From the sequence record NC_048182.1: a stretch of DNA of 64,000 bases. One strand, written 5' to 3'. Below the pieces are notes generated by a model that made no database searches, was not told the origin of the DNA, and worked only from the letters and a program-made list of their open reading frames with translations. The translations under genes were made by a program, and so were the position numbers. Positions 29,959 to 36,265 of this stretch are shown here, in pieces. Numbering within the stretch: the stretch's first letter is position 1; each line of letters starts with the position of its first letter.

Positions 29959-30720
29959 ATGTCTAAGAAAACTACTGCTGCTTCCCAGAAATCTGCTGCT
30001 AAACGTAATGCACGTGCTAAAGCTAAATCAGCTTCTGCTGCTAAAGCCAAGCAGACACCTATGGCTCAAGCTAAGCGTAAGATGCGTGGGTTGAATATCG
30101 GCGGTAATAATAACTTCGACTCTGTGTTAGAACAGGCTGTTCGTCAAATCAACAAAGGTGGCAACGTATCCGGCCCGGCATTTAATTCTACTGAAGAAGT
30201 CATGGACGGTATTGTTAAAGCTGCTGGTGAAACCTTCAAGTTGTTCTGCTACAACGCAGTAGCAAAAGAGCTGGTAGATAAAGGCGCTATCGAACACAAC
30301 TTCCGCATCGACATCAATATGATCGGTGAAGGTATGATGTTGATTGATAATCGTGTAACCACACTACGCGCATACATCAACTCTCCAGAGGCTGATGAAG
30401 GTGTAATCGGTACCGAAGCCCTGGAAATCGGCACACTCATTCAGAACTACGCTGATGAGCTGTATGAAGAGATCGCTCGTATGGAAGAGCATTCTCTGAT
30501 CATCGAAGAAACCGTTGGTCGTCTGGCTGCTGAAATTACAGAAGGTAGCGAGTCCGAACGTCGTGCACGTGTACTGACCACTGTTGCATACAAACTTCTG
30601 GCAGCTATCAAACTCCAGCTGACTCCGGCAGAAGTTGCTGCTGAGAATGAAACTCCAGCTGAAGAAGCTGTAGCAAAAGAAGACGTATCTGAGGACGAAT
30701 CCTTAGAGAAAGCAGAATAA
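29959..30720 (+). CDS. Conserved protein with Lys/Ala-rich basic N-tail and acidic C-tail
   Basis: 253 aa, AGAGG RBS, optimised codons. Confidence 0.8.
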   Translation: MSKKTTAASQKSAAKRNARAKAKSASAAKAKQTPMAQAKRKMRGLNIGGNNNFDSVLEQAVRQINKGGNVSGPAFNSTEEVMDGIVKAAGETFKLFCYNAVAKELVDKGAIEHNFRIDINMIGEGMMLIDNRVTTLRAYINSPEADEGVIGTEALEIGTLIQNYADELYEEIARMEEHSLIIEETVGRLAAEITEGSESERRARVLTTVAYKLLAAIKLQLTPAEVAAENETPAEEAVAKEDVSEDESLEKAE

Positions 30721-30754: not shown

Positions 30755-32374
30755 ATGTCTGAAGAAAAACAAGTTCCTGTATCAGAAATGGCACAGGGTA
30801 TTGCGCAGGAGGCAGTGATCAGTACACTGCGTTCTGCTATTATTGGTGATGTTGATGAAGGTGAACTTGCTTTACCTTTATTCCTGGGTACCGATCAAGG
30901 CCCACACCAGATCATCTACCAAACTGCACGTGCTTACATGGGCTTTGATGAAGCTGTTAAGCGTGGTGCTGAACGTGAAGCGGAAGTTCTGAAAACTCAA
31001 TTCGAACAACTGCGTGAAGAACACTTCCCAGGCGTTGATGACACTGAGCTGTCCATCATGCTGCAGAACTACTTCAATTTCTTCTTCCGTACCTTTGACC
31101 GTGCGATGGTTCGTTCATCTACCATTGATCTTTGCGGTCCTAAGAATTGGACTAACAGCACACCAGGTCGTGGTGAAACTCGCATGGGCTTTATCAATGC
31201 GATGAAACCATCCGTAGACGCTAAGATGTCTATGCGTGACCGCATGCGTCGTAACTTCCTTCAGGCCTACGATCAACCAGACAGCTTTAACATGATGCTG
31301 CTGAACTCCATGATCTTCCTGAAAGTGAACATCCCGACCCCTATGGATTTGATTCGTCTGATTAACGACATTCAAACCAAGCTCCGTCAGTACGGTGAAC
31401 GTTTCCAGGTTTCTTCTTTACATCTGGAACGTGCGGGCATTTCAGAACTGATCGTTGACTTTGTACTTGACCATACCAAATACTGGTCGGTAAAAGATAT
31501 CGAAGATCCTCGTGACCTGAAACCGTATATCCGCTCAAGCGATATTAACCATATCGCTCAGATGCTACTGTCAATCTCATCTCCTCGCGGTGTTAACTTC
31601 CGTATTTACTGCCTGGCTAACCAGTGTAAATACAGTGCGGTTAAAGTTATCGATCCTGCCAACATGGTTCTGACTGTTGAAGAGGACATGCCAGAAGAAC
31701 ATCGCAAGATCAAAACCGAATTGATGACCACACAACGCAAACTGTCTCGCGAAGAGCTGGATGCGATTGTGCCGGTATATCGTGATAAAGAAGGTAAACC
31801 AATCGACCTGGATATCCCTCTGAGTAACGGTACTGGTAAACTTGTCCTGGGTGTTCCTTTCCTGGATGAGTACTTTGGTGCATTCGTTCGTATGGCTGAA
31901 CGTATCAACCCACGACTTCGTCAATTGGCAGTGGATTTCCCTAACCCGAAAATCTATGCTGATAAACGTAAAGAGTTTATGTCAACTCTGCGCATGGGCG
32001 AATACCTTCAGTGGATTCGCCAGTACGTTGTCTTCCCAGCACCAGGTACTGAGGGTGAAGATGATGTGATGGATCGCGATGAAGATCCAGAAGGATTTGA
32101 AGAAGGTCTGATTGACATCTTTAACAAAGATGAAGATCTCTTCGGTCGTACTCTGGAGAAGGTTCTTTCTATCACCCCTCGTCTAACTTATACCTTTATC
32201 GGGGTAATGGAAGATGAATGCCCAAGCTGTAAGAAAAAAGCAGAAGGTGTTCGTTCTAATGAACTGGCCGGCTTCACCCCTATCGACCCAGTTATGAATT
32301 TTTTCGACCATCGCCGAATGATGATTGGCTTGCAGGCAAGCCGAGCGAGTTTCGTAGAGGACAGTCTTTCTTAA
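30755..32374 (+). CDS. Conserved protein, candidate tail/baseplate-hub assembly chaperone (unshifted, G-like product)
   Basis: 539 aa with C-terminal CPSC; carries an in-frame T-TTT-TTC 22 codons before its stop. The functional call is inference. Confidence 0.55.
   Translation: MSEEKQVPVSEMAQGIAQEAVISTLRSAIIGDVDEGELALPLFLGTDQGPHQIIYQTARAYMGFDEAVKRGAEREAEVLKTQFEQLREEHFPGVDDTELSIMLQNYFNFFFRTFDRAMVRSSTIDLCGPKNWTNSTPGRGETRMGFINAMKPSVDAKMSMRDRMRRNFLQAYDQPDSFNMMLLNSMIFLKVNIPTPMDLIRLINDIQTKLRQYGERFQVSSLHLERAGISELIVDFVLDHTKYWSVKDIEDPRDLKPYIRSSDINHIAQMLLSISSPRGVNFRIYCLANQCKYSAVKVIDPANMVLTVEEDMPEEHRKIKTELMTTQRKLSREELDAIVPVYRDKEGKPIDLDIPLSNGTGKLVLGVPFLDEYFGAFVRMAERINPRLRQLAVDFPNPKIYADKRKEFMSTLRMGEYLQWIRQYVVFPAPGTEGEDDVMDRDEDPEGFEEGLIDIFNKDEDLFGRTLEKVLSITPRLTYTFIGVMEDECPSCKKKAEGVRSNELAGFTPIDPVMNFFDHRRMMIGLQASRASFVEDSLS
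32299..32305 (+). other. Candidate programmed -1 ribosomal frameshift site (U UUU UUC)
   Basis: Codons AAT TTT TTC of the 539-aa ORF; the -1 frame is stop-free from 32263 to 32817 with no ATG/GTG/TTG before 32488; hairpin TTGGCTTG-CAGG-CAAGCCGA at 32325-32344. Confidence 0.65.
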
Positions 32375-32817
32375 GTTCTTACGAGCCAGTTAATCCTGGA
32401 ATCGCCCCTAAGCTAGATGAGCTATGGATTAAAAATGCAGGAGAGAAGGACTCTCTCCTAATCCAGAAAGAAGAACGTCGTCTCTTCATGTTGAAGTATG
32501 GATACGTTAGCATGGGTGAGAACTTGTCTTCTTATCTTGTCTACAATGATCAGTTAAAAGATTACCATCATCCTTTATCTGGCCGAGCTTTTGGTGAAAC
32601 ATTCGGCCTGCGCGAATATAGTAAATGGATCAAGCTATCTGACTATTTACATATGCCGGTTGACGTTATTGACGATATTTTGGAAGGGGTTGCTAAGGGC
32701 GAAGAGAAGAATGCTAAACTCAAAGCCGAAGCAGCCAAACGTGCGGCACAAAACGCTGGTCAAAGTAATGACCCACAGACGGCCGCAATCCGTAATGCAC
32801 AAAAGGGTAAAAACTAA
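32305..32817 (+). CDS. Frameshift extension (GT-like, 170 aa); alternatively a 109-aa ORF from ATG 32488
   Basis: ATG 32488 has no SD-like sequence; upstream open frame reads protein-like (RPSPNDDWLAGKPSEF...EERRLFMLKYG); KLSDYLHMPV resembles T-type chaperone motifs. Confidence 0.6.
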   Translation, partial: RPSPNDDWLAGKPSEFRRGQSFLSSYEPVNPGIAPKLDELWIKNAGEKDSLLIQKEERRLFMLKYGYVSMGENLSSYLVYNDQLKDYHHPLSGRAFGETFGLREYSKWIKLSDYLHMPVDVIDDILEGVAKGEEKNAKLKAEAAKRAAQNAGQSNDPQTAAIRNAQKGKN

Positions 32818-33359
32818 TGGGTAATTCCTATACTCCTCCTCAGCTTCAAAAGCAAAAAACAGCTGTAGAAGAACTGCAACCTAAAGAAAACCTGATGGAC
32901 AGTTCCATTGGTCGTCCTGCTGAAAAGTCAGCGGTTGTCATGCCAGTCGATATCTATAAGAAATCGATTGATGAACTGACCCTGTTGCTGAAAGACGAGC
33001 TTACCGGTTCTCTGGAAGAACGTACTAAGTTCCAACAGAACTTCATCAAAAACCTGGAACCAATGTTGAACCTCGATGAACCACTGGTTAAACAGATTCT
33101 GGATTATTTCATTATCACGATCGTTAAGAACCGCGATACCTACAACTACAATAACCTACTGCGTCCGTGTTATGTGCTTGAAGGTAAGATGAATGCCAGT
33201 GATCTGAACCGCTATAAGCGCTTCCTGGACTTCATTACCTGTCTGGCCGATAATGCCAAAGATCGTACTCGTTTCATCGCTAACTTTGACATTGTCAAGT
33301 TCTCAGCAATGTTCGGCGCTAAAGCTAAACAAAACCTGACTAACTACATTTACCGCTAA
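32817..33359 (+). CDS. Conserved hypothetical helical protein
   Basis: 180 aa, coupled to the upstream stop (TAATG). Confidence 0.8.
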   Translation: MGNSYTPPQLQKQKTAVEELQPKENLMDSSIGRPAEKSAVVMPVDIYKKSIDELTLLLKDELTGSLEERTKFQQNFIKNLEPMLNLDEPLVKQILDYFIITIVKNRDTYNYNNLLRPCYVLEGKMNASDLNRYKRFLDFITCLADNAKDRTRFIANFDIVKFSAMFGAKAKQNLTNYIYR

Positions 33360-33362
33360 TCG

Positions 33363-33394
33363 TATCCTGGCCTTCCTTCGGGGAGGTCAGGGTA
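33363..33394 (+). terminator. Hairpin terminator
   Basis: TATCCTGGCCTTCC-TTCG-GGGAGGTCAGGGTA. Confidence 0.8.
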
Positions 33395-33427
33395 TTATTT
33401 GTCTATTACAACAACAGGGCTATCACA

Positions 33428-34195
33428 ATGGATTTTCAAGACGATCTGACTCACTACAGTCGAATCATCGCGGGTTTAGAATCTGTGCATGAGCATATTA
33501 ACTATAACGCTGGCATCGATGTTGATGGAACATATGCGTTAACCGTGCTGGAGCTTCAAGCTCAGGACGAAGGTTATATCGAAGGTACAGAAGGGTTTAT
33601 GGATTCTGTTAAGAAAGGTGCTCAAGACATAGTTAAATGGATTAAGCAAGTACTTACTGCGATCGGTAATTTTCTAATAGGGAAAAAGAAAGCCCAGCCA
33701 ATATGGCAGGATAAATGGAGCGAGATTAACGTAGAAGAAGTGAAGAAGAGCATGCATTCACTTTACGGTAATGCGCTTAATGCCATTGCAACCCATTTAA
33801 CTGATGATAAATTTGATTCAGTTCGCCCTTACTTTAAATTTATGGATTTAGATAAACTTTCAGAAAAAGCCACTGTGATGCTTAAGAAAATTGATGATCC
33901 CGATTCTTATGGGCATAGTAGTTTATTCCATGATGTCCGTCAGTTGAGCAAAGATATCCTTGCTGAGCTTGAGCGTGTTGAAAAAGCTATTAAAGGTCTT
34001 GATTTAAAAGCCACTGGTTCAGGGATCGCTGCCAATAAGTTAACAACATTGGCTGGAGCATTAGGTCGTGCTGAAGATGTTTTGATGACCGCATGGTACA
34101 AACATACCGAGGCGTTAGCTGAAGCTGATCTAAACACAAGCCGCCGCAATTATAAAGAACAACAAGAATTTTACGATAATCAGGGTAAGAAATAA
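33428..34195 (+). CDS. Internal head protein paralog
   Basis: DDLTHYSRIIAGLES...YALTVLELQAQDEGYIEGTE-GFMDSVKKGAQDIVKWIK. Confidence 0.75.
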   Translation: MDFQDDLTHYSRIIAGLESVHEHINYNAGIDVDGTYALTVLELQAQDEGYIEGTEGFMDSVKKGAQDIVKWIKQVLTAIGNFLIGKKKAQPIWQDKWSEINVEEVKKSMHSLYGNALNAIATHLTDDKFDSVRPYFKFMDLDKLSEKATVMLKKIDDPDSYGHSSLFHDVRQLSKDILAELERVEKAIKGLDLKATGSGIAANKLTTLAGALGRAEDVLMTAWYKHTEALAEADLNTSRRNYKEQQEFYDNQGKK

Positions 34196-35209
34196 ATGAC
34201 TCCATTTGACGATGTCCAGCATTATGCGACTATTATTGCTGGTTGTGAAAATATCAATAAACGTTTAGAAGGCGGTTCTAAACTTAGCCAGGATGGTCGT
34301 TACGCTCAAACGGTACTAACCCTCCATGCTGGCGATGCCGGGTTTGTTGCAGGGACTGAGGGTTTCATGGACTCTATCAAACGTGGGGCTACCAACATCT
34401 ACGAATGGATCAAGAAAATGATCTCTGCTATTCGTGATTGGTTCCGCGGTAATAAGGTCGATAAAGAAGCAGAACGTCTTGATCAGTTATCAAAACAATT
34501 TGATCTCGGCATCTCTGGCGCTGAAATCAAGCGTATGGGTGCTCGTAAGTTTGTTCAGTTCTTGGTGGCTAGTAAGCAACCACAACGTGCTGGTAATGAA
34601 CGTATCAGTATTGACACTGTTGCTGAAGAAGTCGAGAAGATGTCACCTGAGCAGTTGAAACAGGTTGAACTTTATCTAGCTAGTATTACTGACGATCCTG
34701 AATTCAAAGAAGCAGTGAAAGAAGAACATGACTTTGTTGTTAACAAAGCTATGGCGGCTATCAAACCTCGTCTTACTGAACTTAATGGTTTGTTAGAACA
34801 AATGAAGGAAGCCGACCCTGACGGTGAAGCGGGTAAAGCACTGGGGATCGAACCTGATCGTGCGTTCAGTCAGTTCAGTGATTTACTGACTAAGATCGAT
34901 CATATCAGTGCTAGCACGCTTACTTCCACTACTAACCGTATTGGGCGCGGTGTCGTAGATGCTAACAAGCTGCTCAAATCAGCAACCGATAAACTCGATT
35001 CGCTGAACAATACAAACAAAGTGGGTGGTGGTCCAGTTGTAAGCAAAGCAGCACGCATTGTAAGCCTCTTGACAACGTTTGTTGAAGTAGGACGTAAGTT
35101 AGTAGCCCAACTGGTTGTAATCATGGAAAAAGGCGAATACAATGCTCTGTCGGTATTCATCTCTCGTCGGTGGTTTGAAGCTCGAACTCAATTTGCAGCA
35201 ATTAAATAA
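34196..35209 (+). CDS. Internal head protein paralog
   Basis: DDVQHYATIIAGCE...DGRYAQTVLTLHAGDAGFVAGTE-GFMDSIKRGATNIYEWIK. Confidence 0.75.
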   Translation: MTPFDDVQHYATIIAGCENINKRLEGGSKLSQDGRYAQTVLTLHAGDAGFVAGTEGFMDSIKRGATNIYEWIKKMISAIRDWFRGNKVDKEAERLDQLSKQFDLGISGAEIKRMGARKFVQFLVASKQPQRAGNERISIDTVAEEVEKMSPEQLKQVELYLASITDDPEFKEAVKEEHDFVVNKAMAAIKPRLTELNGLLEQMKEADPDGEAGKALGIEPDRAFSQFSDLLTKIDHISASTLTSTTNRIGRGVVDANKLLKSATDKLDSLNNTNKVGGGPVVSKAARIVSLLTTFVEVGRKLVAQLVVIMEKGEYNALSVFISRRWFEARTQFAAIK

Positions 35210-35218
35210 GGTAATATA

Positions 35219-36265
35219 ATGGATATTAATGATGACCTCGTGCATTACGGCAACATGCTTGCTGGATGCGAATCTATTAACGACGTTTTAGCAAACGGCG
35301 GTAAGCTCTCTTACGAGGGTCGCTATGCTCAAACGGTACTAAGCCTACATGCCCAGGACGCTGGCTTTGTAGCTGGAACTGAAGGGTTTGTCGAGAACGT
35401 CAAAGCCGGTGCTGGTAAAGCCATTAAGTGGATCATGGACTTACTAAAAAGTATTCGTGATTTCTTCTTTGGTAGTCATGAAGAGCAAGTTAAGAAAGCC
35501 GGTGCTAATGCAGAAAAGGCTGCCGATATCATTGCTAACCCAAATAAGCTGTTCGGTGCTGGGATTACCCAATCCCTCGACATCCAGGCTAATTTTACTG
35601 TTAGCAAAAGTGCAGCAGAAACTGCCAAGAAACAATTCAATGCTTTATCCCCTGAAGCTAAGAAAGAAGCAGAAGAAGAGTTTAAAGCAAAAGCAAAAGA
35701 AAACTCTCTGAATGAAACAGGTCAAGCGACCGTTGATAAAATTAAAGCAGCTATCACTACCGGTGCTACAGCTTTAAAACGTCCAGCATCTGAAATTGCC
35801 CGTCTTAACGCAATGGAAGACGGTGGGCTTTCTAATCGCCTTGGTCTGGGTGACGGTAACGCTTATGAAACTATCATTGGCGACATCCTGGGTGACATCA
35901 AAGGTTTGAAAGTAAGTACAATCTCTAACACTGTTAAGTATCTGATCAAAGTAGCGGACGGTGCGAATACCGATCTTAAAGATGCTGTCAAAGAGTTGGA
36001 AGGTTTAACCAAAAAGATTGGTGAAACCGGTAACCAAGCCGATCAACGTAAACTTAGCCGCGCTGGTATGATTGTTAACGAACTGGCCAAAATTGTTAAG
36101 GGAACTCAACAGTTGGTTATTACGGTTAACAATGCATTAACTCAAGCTATTCGCTCTGAACAGGATAAGGTAGTCGCTGCTATCCTGAGAAAGAATAAGA
36201 TCACGGTTGCCGGGGTTCTTAATAAAGACGATGACAGTGAAGCTAAAGAAAAGCTGACCAAATAA
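35219..36265 (+). CDS. Internal head protein paralog
   Basis: DDLVHYGNMLAGCES...EGRYAQTVLSLHAQDAGFVAGTE-GFVENVKAGAGKAIKWI. Confidence 0.75.
   Translation: MDINDDLVHYGNMLAGCESINDVLANGGKLSYEGRYAQTVLSLHAQDAGFVAGTEGFVENVKAGAGKAIKWIMDLLKSIRDFFFGSHEEQVKKAGANAEKAADIIANPNKLFGAGITQSLDIQANFTVSKSAAETAKKQFNALSPEAKKEAEEEFKAKAKENSLNETGQATVDKIKAAITTGATALKRPASEIARLNAMEDGGLSNRLGLGDGNAYETIIGDILGDIKGLKVSTISNTVKYLIKVADGANTDLKDAVKELEGLTKKIGETGNQADQRKLSRAGMIVNELAKIVKGTQQLVITVNNALTQAIRSEQDKVVAAILRKNKITVAGVLNKDDDSEAKEKLTK

Follow-up and report, generated by a model that had tools for sequence, protein, structure and literature searches.

Does the run of T's near the 3' end of gene gp033 of Edwardsiella phage pEt-SU, followed by a long open reading frame in the -1 frame, mark a place where one message is decoded into two proteins? 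We analysed a 64,000-nucleotide stretch of this genome (NC_048182.1; hereafter the window), in which an earlier note, made from sequence alone, had proposed a programmed -1 frameshift giving products of 539 and 687 aa (517 + 170) and had read the locus as a lambda G/GT-like gene pair. The note's observation is confirmed: the heptamer T_TTT_TTC lies in X_XXY_YYZ phase within the upstream frame (codons AAT TTT TTC), the -1 frame overlaps it and runs on, and no ATG, GTG or TTG occurs in that frame for 75 codons, until the ATG of the annotated downstream gene. Its interpretation is only partly supported, in that the frameshift itself gains strong comparative support whereas membership in the lambda G/GT family does not. 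Within the window the motif TTTTTTC occurs only 5 times on both strands, against 22.6 +/- 5.2 expected, indicating that it is avoided in general and yet kept here in every relative examined.

Features of the gp033-gp034 locus of phage pEt-SU (positions within the window)
Position	Strand	Feature	Remarks
29959..30720	+	gp032, upstream syntenic gene (phiKZ gp078 position)	same strand, probably the same transcript
30755..32374	+	ORF0 = gp033 (HOV39_gp033), 539 aa	phiKZ gp077 / PhiPA3 gp074 / EL gp47 / Goslar gp081 family; Chimalliviridae core gene cg18; phrog_4585
32260..32262	+	TGA in the -1 frame	upstream limit for a productive shift into the -1 frame, which is open from 32263 to 32817
32299..32305	+	slippery heptamer T_TTT_TTC	22 sense codons before the TAA of ORF0
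32305..32817	+	-1-frame extension read after the predicted shift	170 codons plus stop (32815-32817)
32306..32374	+	dual-coding overlap	22 codons plus stop of the 0-frame C-terminal helix; first 23 codons of the -1-frame extension
32325..32344	+	local 8-bp hairpin	starts 19 nt after the heptamer; not conserved, probably not a required stimulator
32375..32487	+	stretch annotated as intergenic	-1-frame coding linker without any start codon
32488..32817	+	annotated gp034, 109 aa; phrog_19747	conserved C-terminal domain of the extension; family profile already matches 5 residues upstream of this ATG
32817..33359	+	gp035, downstream syntenic gene, 180 aa; phrog_14374	its ATG overlaps the stop of the -1 ORF
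33362..33395	+	intrinsic terminator, 15-bp stem	closes the gp032-gp035 unit

We first asked whether relatives share the arrangement. The upstream protein belongs to the phiKZ gp077 family: phrog_4585 matches all members, GenBank notes in PhiPA3 name the homologues, tblastn links them, and synteny with the virion RNA polymerase beta subunit gene is retained; Table S3 of PMC10299810 lists the family as cg18, a gene of unknown function among the 68 core genes of the nucleus-forming jumbo phages, and includes pEt-SU among the phages studied. In all 39 related phage genomes or contigs examined (phiKZ-type PA7, PhiPA3, EL, OBP, SPN3US, Goslar, RSL2 and others, with 25-76% identity among the 18 GenBank relatives first compared; a scan of IMG/VR added only four new loci), the downstream ORF is in the -1 frame and overlaps the 3' end of ORF0, by 55-259 nt. 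The slip site is an in-phase T_TTT_TTN in 35, G_TTT_TTT in 2 and G_GTT_TTT in 2. The earlier note had named loss of the heptamer or of the open -1 frame in orthologues, and an assembly error in the T run, as outcomes that would count against it; these tests came out in its favour, since orthologues keep the heptamer and an open -1 frame and 39 independent assemblies rule out a T-run assembly error. The annotated starts of the downstream gene are inconsistent among relatives, being ATG, GTG or TTG and lying 78-255 nt after the site or even before it.

Conservation of the site exceeds what the protein requires. The residue before the Phe-Phe pair varies (N, V, S, T, L, A, G), yet its codon ends in T in 31 of 32 sequences, and the first Phe codon is TTT in 32 of 32, although these genes use TTT for only about 34% of Phe codons (about 0.34 expected). 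No fused in-frame version, which would have proved a single polypeptide, exists among 51 close homologues (527-559 aa) or 150 representatives, and 135 of 143 full-length representatives have Phe-Phe 8-29 residues from the end.

The sequence downstream of the heptamer carries the signature of -1-frame coding. The -1-frame translation is conserved from the heptamer onward, with invariant F, F, P, P directly after it, and tblastn matches to the -1 piece start at residues 1-4 in distant phages. In four close pairs, the stretch annotated as intergenic has pN/pS of 0.16-0.46 in the -1 frame against 1.4-8 in the other two frames. Within the overlap the synonymous rate falls to 0.27, from 0.71-0.72 further downstream; 0-frame codon periodicity vanishes at the heptamer, diversity is low at all three codon positions, and both translations are conserved, a pattern that indicates dual coding. 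Pairing between two conserved nucleotide blocks here, or between them and the heptamer, was considered by eye and was not convincing; the blocks are explained by dual coding, since the only variation in the second is synonymous in both frames. No terminator lies between the two ORFs.

We next looked for elements that might stimulate a shift. RNAalifold on 13 aligned relatives gave -3.2 kcal/mol with no covarying pair, and folding of the 55 nt after the site in 28 phages, each against its own gene's background, gave a mean stability percentile of 0.57, so that no conserved hairpin or pseudoknot was found. The hairpin that the earlier note proposed is real but private to pEt-SU; it starts 19 nt, not 5 nt, after the heptamer, its proposed outer extension uses part of the slip site, and the 102-nt region is no more stable than shuffles (z = -0.58). 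No SD-like element lies upstream of the heptamer, and efficiency may therefore be low. Such elements, a stimulatory RNA structure 5-9 nt downstream or an SD-like element upstream, are usual but not obligatory, and H_HH.U_UU.Y heptamers are among the most efficient -1 sites in Escherichia coli, with U_UU.U_UU.C used by IS elements (PMC4066793).

Together these observations suggest that gp033 is decoded in two ways from one mRNA, a reading to which we assign a probability of roughly 0.75. In this view most ribosomes stay in the 0 frame and stop shortly after the heptamer, giving a 539-aa protein whose last 27 residues form a conserved predicted helix (512-538 in the AF2 model; pLDDT 82.6, pTM 0.83), whereas a fraction, with tRNA-Phe on UUU in the P site and UUC in the A site, slip back one nucleotide, re-pair with UUU UUU and read on in the -1 frame. 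The resulting 687-aa protein would share the first 517 residues, followed by a poorly conserved linker of roughly 60 residues and the conserved domain of roughly 110 residues now annotated as gp034, so that the shift would swap a C-terminal helix for a linker plus an extra domain in a fixed ratio set by the site. The motif and its phase, the frames, their conservation across the phiKZ-like phages, selection on the synonymous bases of the heptamer, the coding signature of the -1 frame where no start codon exists, and dual coding in the overlap are established by the sequence comparisons; that the long trans-frame product is made, that the slip is ribosomal rather than transcriptional, that the heptamer works without a dedicated RNA stimulator, the ratio of the products and their function are all inferred. 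The ATG of gp034 could additionally start a free 109-aa protein.

Transcriptional slippage is the main rival, although we consider it unlikely: the phage or host RNA polymerase would add one extra U in the T run in some transcripts, whose standard translation would give the same 687-aa product. The site is a homopolymer, with 6 T's in pEt-SU and most relatives and 7-8 in PA7, SPN3US, Goslar, Simmy50, RSL2 and JM-2012; these phages transcribe with their own unusual multisubunit polymerases, of unknown slippage behaviour, and UUUUUUU is avoided in E. coli genes partly because of such slippage (PMC4066793). However, most sites have only 6 T's, shorter than runs known to slip efficiently, and the run sits in X_XXY_YYZ phase in 35 of 39. 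Among six-T sites the phase NNT TTT TTC outnumbers NNV TTT TTT by about 21 to 2, a preference to which polymerase slippage would be indifferent but which tandem tRNA re-pairing requires, and the five-T variants G_GTT_TTT keep the in-phase A-site tetramer.

The reading of the locus as two ordinary genes, with gp034 starting only at its own ATG and the region between untranslated, is very unlikely. It is the annotation in every GenBank record seen, an ATG exists, and PHROGs holds the small protein as its own family; yet the -1 frame upstream of that ATG is conserved as protein, with purifying selection in that frame only, the family profile extends upstream of the ATG, relatives have no start at an equivalent place, the synonymous bases of the heptamer are fixed as described above, and the ATG has no well-spaced SD. 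An SD-like AAGAGGA about 55 nt after the slip site is followed by no start codon in any frame. An assembly error in the T run, or a decaying gene, is effectively refuted, since, although homopolymers are error-prone in some sequencing chemistries, the same frame arrangement appears in 39 independent assemblies from many laboratories and metagenomes and both C-termini are under selection.

A literature search on frameshifting in phiKZ, Chimalliviridae or jumbo phages, and on gp077 or gp136, found no report of this event among open-access papers and preprints. The mechanism itself is already established, making this a solid further case rather than a new principle: a clean natural example of a U_UUU_UUY frameshift that seems to work without a conserved RNA stimulator, and of a 22-codon dual-coding overlap. 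If the recoding is real, hundreds of jumbo-phage genomes are misannotated at a core locus, every record inspected giving two genes with a different arbitrary start for the second, and one 'hypothetical' small gene disappears into a larger protein. Proteomic, knock-down and localisation data for phiKZ gp077, Goslar gp081 and their downstream neighbours would also need re-reading, because tagging or silencing one ORF affects two products.

We then compared the locus with known frameshifted systems. As in lambda gpG/gpGT and the conserved tail-assembly-chaperone frameshift of long-tailed phages (P2 E/E+E' in myoviruses), the two predicted products share their N-terminal body and differ at the C-terminus through a -1 shift near the 3' end, the longer is presumably the minor one, in a fixed ratio, and the arrangement is conserved across a whole phage group although sequences diverge. 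However, the pair does not lie between tail-tube and tape-measure genes; its neighbours, with the same synteny in relatives, are the virion RNA polymerase beta subunit, gp079-like and gp078-like genes, a 180-aa gene, internal-head-protein paralogues and DNA polymerase. The upstream product, at 539 aa (481-690 aa across the family) rather than about 100-150 aa, is four times too large, and its 22-residue 0-frame tail after the site is itself conserved. The earlier note had itself remarked on the large size and the absence of an adjacent tape-measure gene. No match to a tail-assembly-chaperone family was found in Pfam, PHROGs, NCBIfam or PDB sequences, and Foldseek listed one 'tail assembly chaperone' at E 1.3 only. 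T7 gene 10A/10B likewise encodes a large phage protein, the capsid protein, that gains a C-terminal extension through a -1 shift on a U-rich site close to its stop codon, but the protein family is different, and here the extension is 170 residues with its own conserved domain and the event is conserved across a family-level group. The IS3-family orfA/orfAB transposase frameshift also uses X_XXY_YYZ heptamers, including U_UU.U_UU.C in some elements (PMC4066793), and yields a fusion with an added domain; IS sites usually have a downstream hairpin or pseudoknot, often with an upstream SD-like stimulator, neither of which is conserved here.

Searches for a named family gave nothing in Pfam, NCBIfam, PHROGs, PDB sequences (queried with a single protein and with a 109-sequence profile) or, by Foldseek, PDB structures, in which the confident model of gp033 has no neighbour; the model of the extension was too poor to search (pLDDT 49). 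The looser proposal of the earlier note, a baseplate-hub chaperone, remains possible but weak. Foldseek against BFVD places proteins named 'Baseplate hub assembly protein, T4-like', 'Baseplate hub subunit' and 'Baseplate hub assembly chaperone' after the family's own members, at E 3.8e-4 to 3e-2 with target TM of 0.46-0.55 and query TM of about 0.3. Neither pEt-SU gp033 nor 49 close homologues have a Pfam hit, while one of 10 distant representatives (P0184) hits PF12322 (T4_baseplate) at 16.4 bits, E 0.0076, below the curated cut-off of 24.5 bits; some GenBank records annotate homologues as putative baseplate hub assembly protein. The T4-type gp26/gp51 proteins are about 200-280 aa, the neighbouring genes here are not baseplate genes, and no frameshift is known in T4 genes 26 or 51. 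A proteomics study lists the Churi homologue among early-expressed proteins (PMC11849849), which fits a late assembly role badly. Our best guess, a doubtful one, is a virion-assembly role related to T4-type baseplate-hub assembly proteins. More speculatively, the pair may be the giant-phage counterpart of the G/GT chaperones, a gp26/gp51-related baseplate-hub or tape-measure assembly factor whose two forms are set in a fixed ratio by a frameshift; although unlikely on present evidence, this would extend the rule of a conserved frameshift in tail assembly genes to phiKZ-like contractile-tailed jumbo phages and to a wider family of about 900 clusters, and would give a first handle on what T4-type hub assembly proteins do. 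The two motifs that the earlier note took to fit a chaperone, CPSC and KLSDYLHMPV, say nothing about such a function; CPSC is instead half of an invariant four-cysteine site (Cys 286, 291, 489 and 492).

In Edwardsiella phage pEt-SU (NC_048182.1, 276,734 bp), to which the window is 100% identical with coordinates equal to those of the genome, gp033 and gp034 are annotated as separate hypothetical proteins. They are flanked upstream by a virion RNA polymerase beta subunit gene and two hypothetical genes, and downstream by a 180-aa gene (gp035), gp036–gp038 and a DNA polymerase gene. Re-examination of this sequence confirmed the observation of the earlier note: the 0-frame codons AAT TTT TTC place a slippery heptamer in X_XXY_YYZ phase, 22 sense codons before the TAA, and the -1 frame is open across it with no ATG, GTG or TTG for a long stretch, such that a shift would give 517 + 170 = 687 residues beside the 539-residue product. 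The heptamer sequence TTTTTTC is strongly under-represented in this genome, with 5 copies on both strands of the 64-kb window against 22.6 +/- 5.2 in shuffles, consistent with general avoidance of slippery T runs.

Features of the gp033–gp034 locus of phage pEt-SU and its surroundings
Feature	Coordinates	Strand	Description
gp033 (ORF0)	30755-32374		Annotated as a hypothetical protein; includes C286, C291, C489 and C492
TGA in the -1 frame	32260-32262		Precedes the -1 frame, which is then open to 32817 with no ATG, GTG or TTG until 32488
Slippery heptamer	32299-32305		T_TTT_TTC; 0-frame codons AAT TTT TTC
Hairpin after the slip site	32325-32344		Begins 19 nt after the site
Hairpin in the -1 linker	32438-32460		10 bp; 5' arm contains AGGAG; 28 nt before ATG 32488
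gp034	32488-32817		Annotated as a hypothetical protein
Intrinsic terminator	33362-33395	+	15-bp stem and T tail, directly after gp035
gp036–gp038	33428-36265		Three consecutive genes

We next asked whether this arrangement is shared by related phages. A tblastn search with ORF0 found 70 phage records and one with the -1 piece found 33; in distant phages the -1 match begins at residues 1–4 of the open frame, far upstream of any annotated start. We first compared 18 relatives with 25–76% identity to gp033: OBP, Survivor, Yubaba, N1M2, SXP01, Kc263, AH04, five Aeromonas phages, Miami, three Vibrio or Photobacterium phages, RisingSun and EL. In all 19 genomes the downstream gene is in the -1 frame, that frame overlaps ORF0 by 88–142 nt, an in-phase T_TTT_TTN is present, and the 0-frame stop lies 66–75 nt after it, at exactly 69 nt in most. 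Nine more distant phages (PhiPA3, Kwan, FishSpeaker, the Phikzvirus PA7, SPN3US, Goslar, Simmy50, RSL2 and Halocynthia phage JM-2012) show the same arrangement, only PhiPA3 among them deviating, with G_TTT_TTT. Four IMG/VR contigs and seven distant metagenomic contigs also conform, bringing the total to 39 of 39 loci. Two of the metagenomic contigs carry G_GTT_TTT and one carries G_TTT_TTT; the variant sites in these lineages and PhiPA3 keep the in-phase T_TTT tetramer at the A site but weaken P-site re-pairing, making them natural material for comparing efficiencies.

Selection at the site acts on the nucleotides and not only on the protein. While the residue before Phe-Phe varies (N, V, S, T, L, A or G), its codon ends in T in 31 of 32 genomes, and the first Phe codon is TTT in 32 of 32, whereas in the rest of the same genes T-ending synonymous codons and TTT each account for about 34%.

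Several lines of sequence evidence indicate that the -1 frame is translated where no start codon exists. The -1 translations align from the heptamer onward, with invariant F, F, P and P directly after it. Upstream of the heptamer, diversity shows normal 0-frame periodicity (third position 0.65, others 0.3–0.4), while downstream the periodicity disappears and all three positions become conserved. By Nei–Gojobori counting in the -1 frame, the synonymous rate is 0.27 in the overlap against 0.71–0.72 further on, the signature of two overlapping coding frames; the 0-frame tail is also conserved as protein and is modelled as a helix. In the stretch that records call intergenic, pN/pS in four close pairs is 0.16–0.46 in the -1 frame, compared with 1.5–3.0 in the 0 frame and 1.4–8 in the +1 frame. 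In the GenBank records of 27 relatives, the downstream gene (95–146 aa) is given a different arbitrary start in almost every case, at ATG, GTG or TTG 78–255 nt after the site and, in Simmy50, before it, while ORF0 carries stray names such as ‘ZipA-like cell division protein’ or ‘baseplate protein’, amounting to systematic misannotation of a core locus. The hairpin in the poorly conserved linker of the -1 ORF could modulate independent initiation of a free small protein, or mean nothing.

We then looked for fused versions of the two frames and found none among 51 close homologues or 150 representatives of the wider family. All 51 close homologues are 527–559 aa, and a profile search of 1.84 billion representatives returned 889 clusters, among the best 150 of which 135 of 143 full-length proteins have Phe-Phe 8–29 residues before their end. 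The short 0-frame tail after the site is therefore a family trait.

Whereas the conserved arrangement, the constraint on the heptamer and the coding signature of the -1 frame are shown by these comparisons, the mechanism and the longer product are inferred from sequence. A ribosomal -1 shift on U_UUU_UUY fits best: in E. coli, H_HH.U_UU.Y heptamers are among the most efficient, U_UU.U_UU.C works above background without stimulators and is used by IS elements, and U_UU.Y is the second-best tetramer (PMC4066793). We found no conserved stimulator. RNAalifold on 13 relatives gives -3.2 kcal/mol with no compensatory pair, and folding of the 55 nt after the site in 28 phages averages the 57th percentile of each gene's own background. 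The pEt-SU hairpin that the earlier note had placed 5 nt after the site is real and locally stable (3rd percentile), but it begins further downstream and is not shared. The main rival is transcriptional slippage on the T run; the phase preference of the run (35 of 39 in tandem-slip phase) and the prevalence of runs of only six T's argue against it, although the sequences alone do not exclude it. No terminator lies between the ORFs, and the strong one that follows gp035 suggests that gp032–gp035 form one transcription unit.

The interpretation offered in the earlier note, a programmed -1 frameshift in a lambda G/GT-like gene pair, is supported in part. The locus works like G/GT in one respect, in that a -1 shift near the 3' end would give two proteins with a common body and different tails, but it does not qualify as a member by the criteria that could be applied, namely position, size and homology. 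Searches of the open-access literature found no report of recoding in phiKZ-like phages.

Finally, we examined what the protein might be. GenBank notes for PhiPA3 equate the family with phiKZ gp077, 201phi2-1 gp136 and EL gp47, and Table S3 of Prichard et al., whose study included pEt-SU, lists Goslar gp081 / phiKZ gp077 / RAY gp267 as core gene cg18, ‘hypothetical protein’, not marked as unique to chimallin phages. The AF2 model is confident (pLDDT 82.6, pTM 0.83) but has no neighbour in the PDB (best E 1.3), and gp033 and 49 homologues hit no Pfam family. In BFVD, the family's own members are followed by proteins named T4-like baseplate hub assembly protein, baseplate hub subunit and hub assembly chaperone (E 3.8e-4 to 3e-2, target TM about 0.5), and one distant relative hits Pfam T4_baseplate below threshold (E 0.0076). 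A proteomics study, however, lists the Churi homologue among early-expressed proteins, which sits uneasily with a late assembly role, and we therefore treat ‘baseplate-hub assembly factor’ as no more than a tentative lead. Four cysteines are invariant in 50 close and 109 distant family members, suggesting a structural zinc site, of which the CPSC motif cited in the earlier note is half. Of gp036–gp038, the first two, to which the scan was confined, give sub-threshold matches to the phiKZ internal head protein family (Pfam phiKZ_IP, E 3e-5 to 6e-5), suggesting a paralogue array of inner-body proteins next to the frameshift gene.
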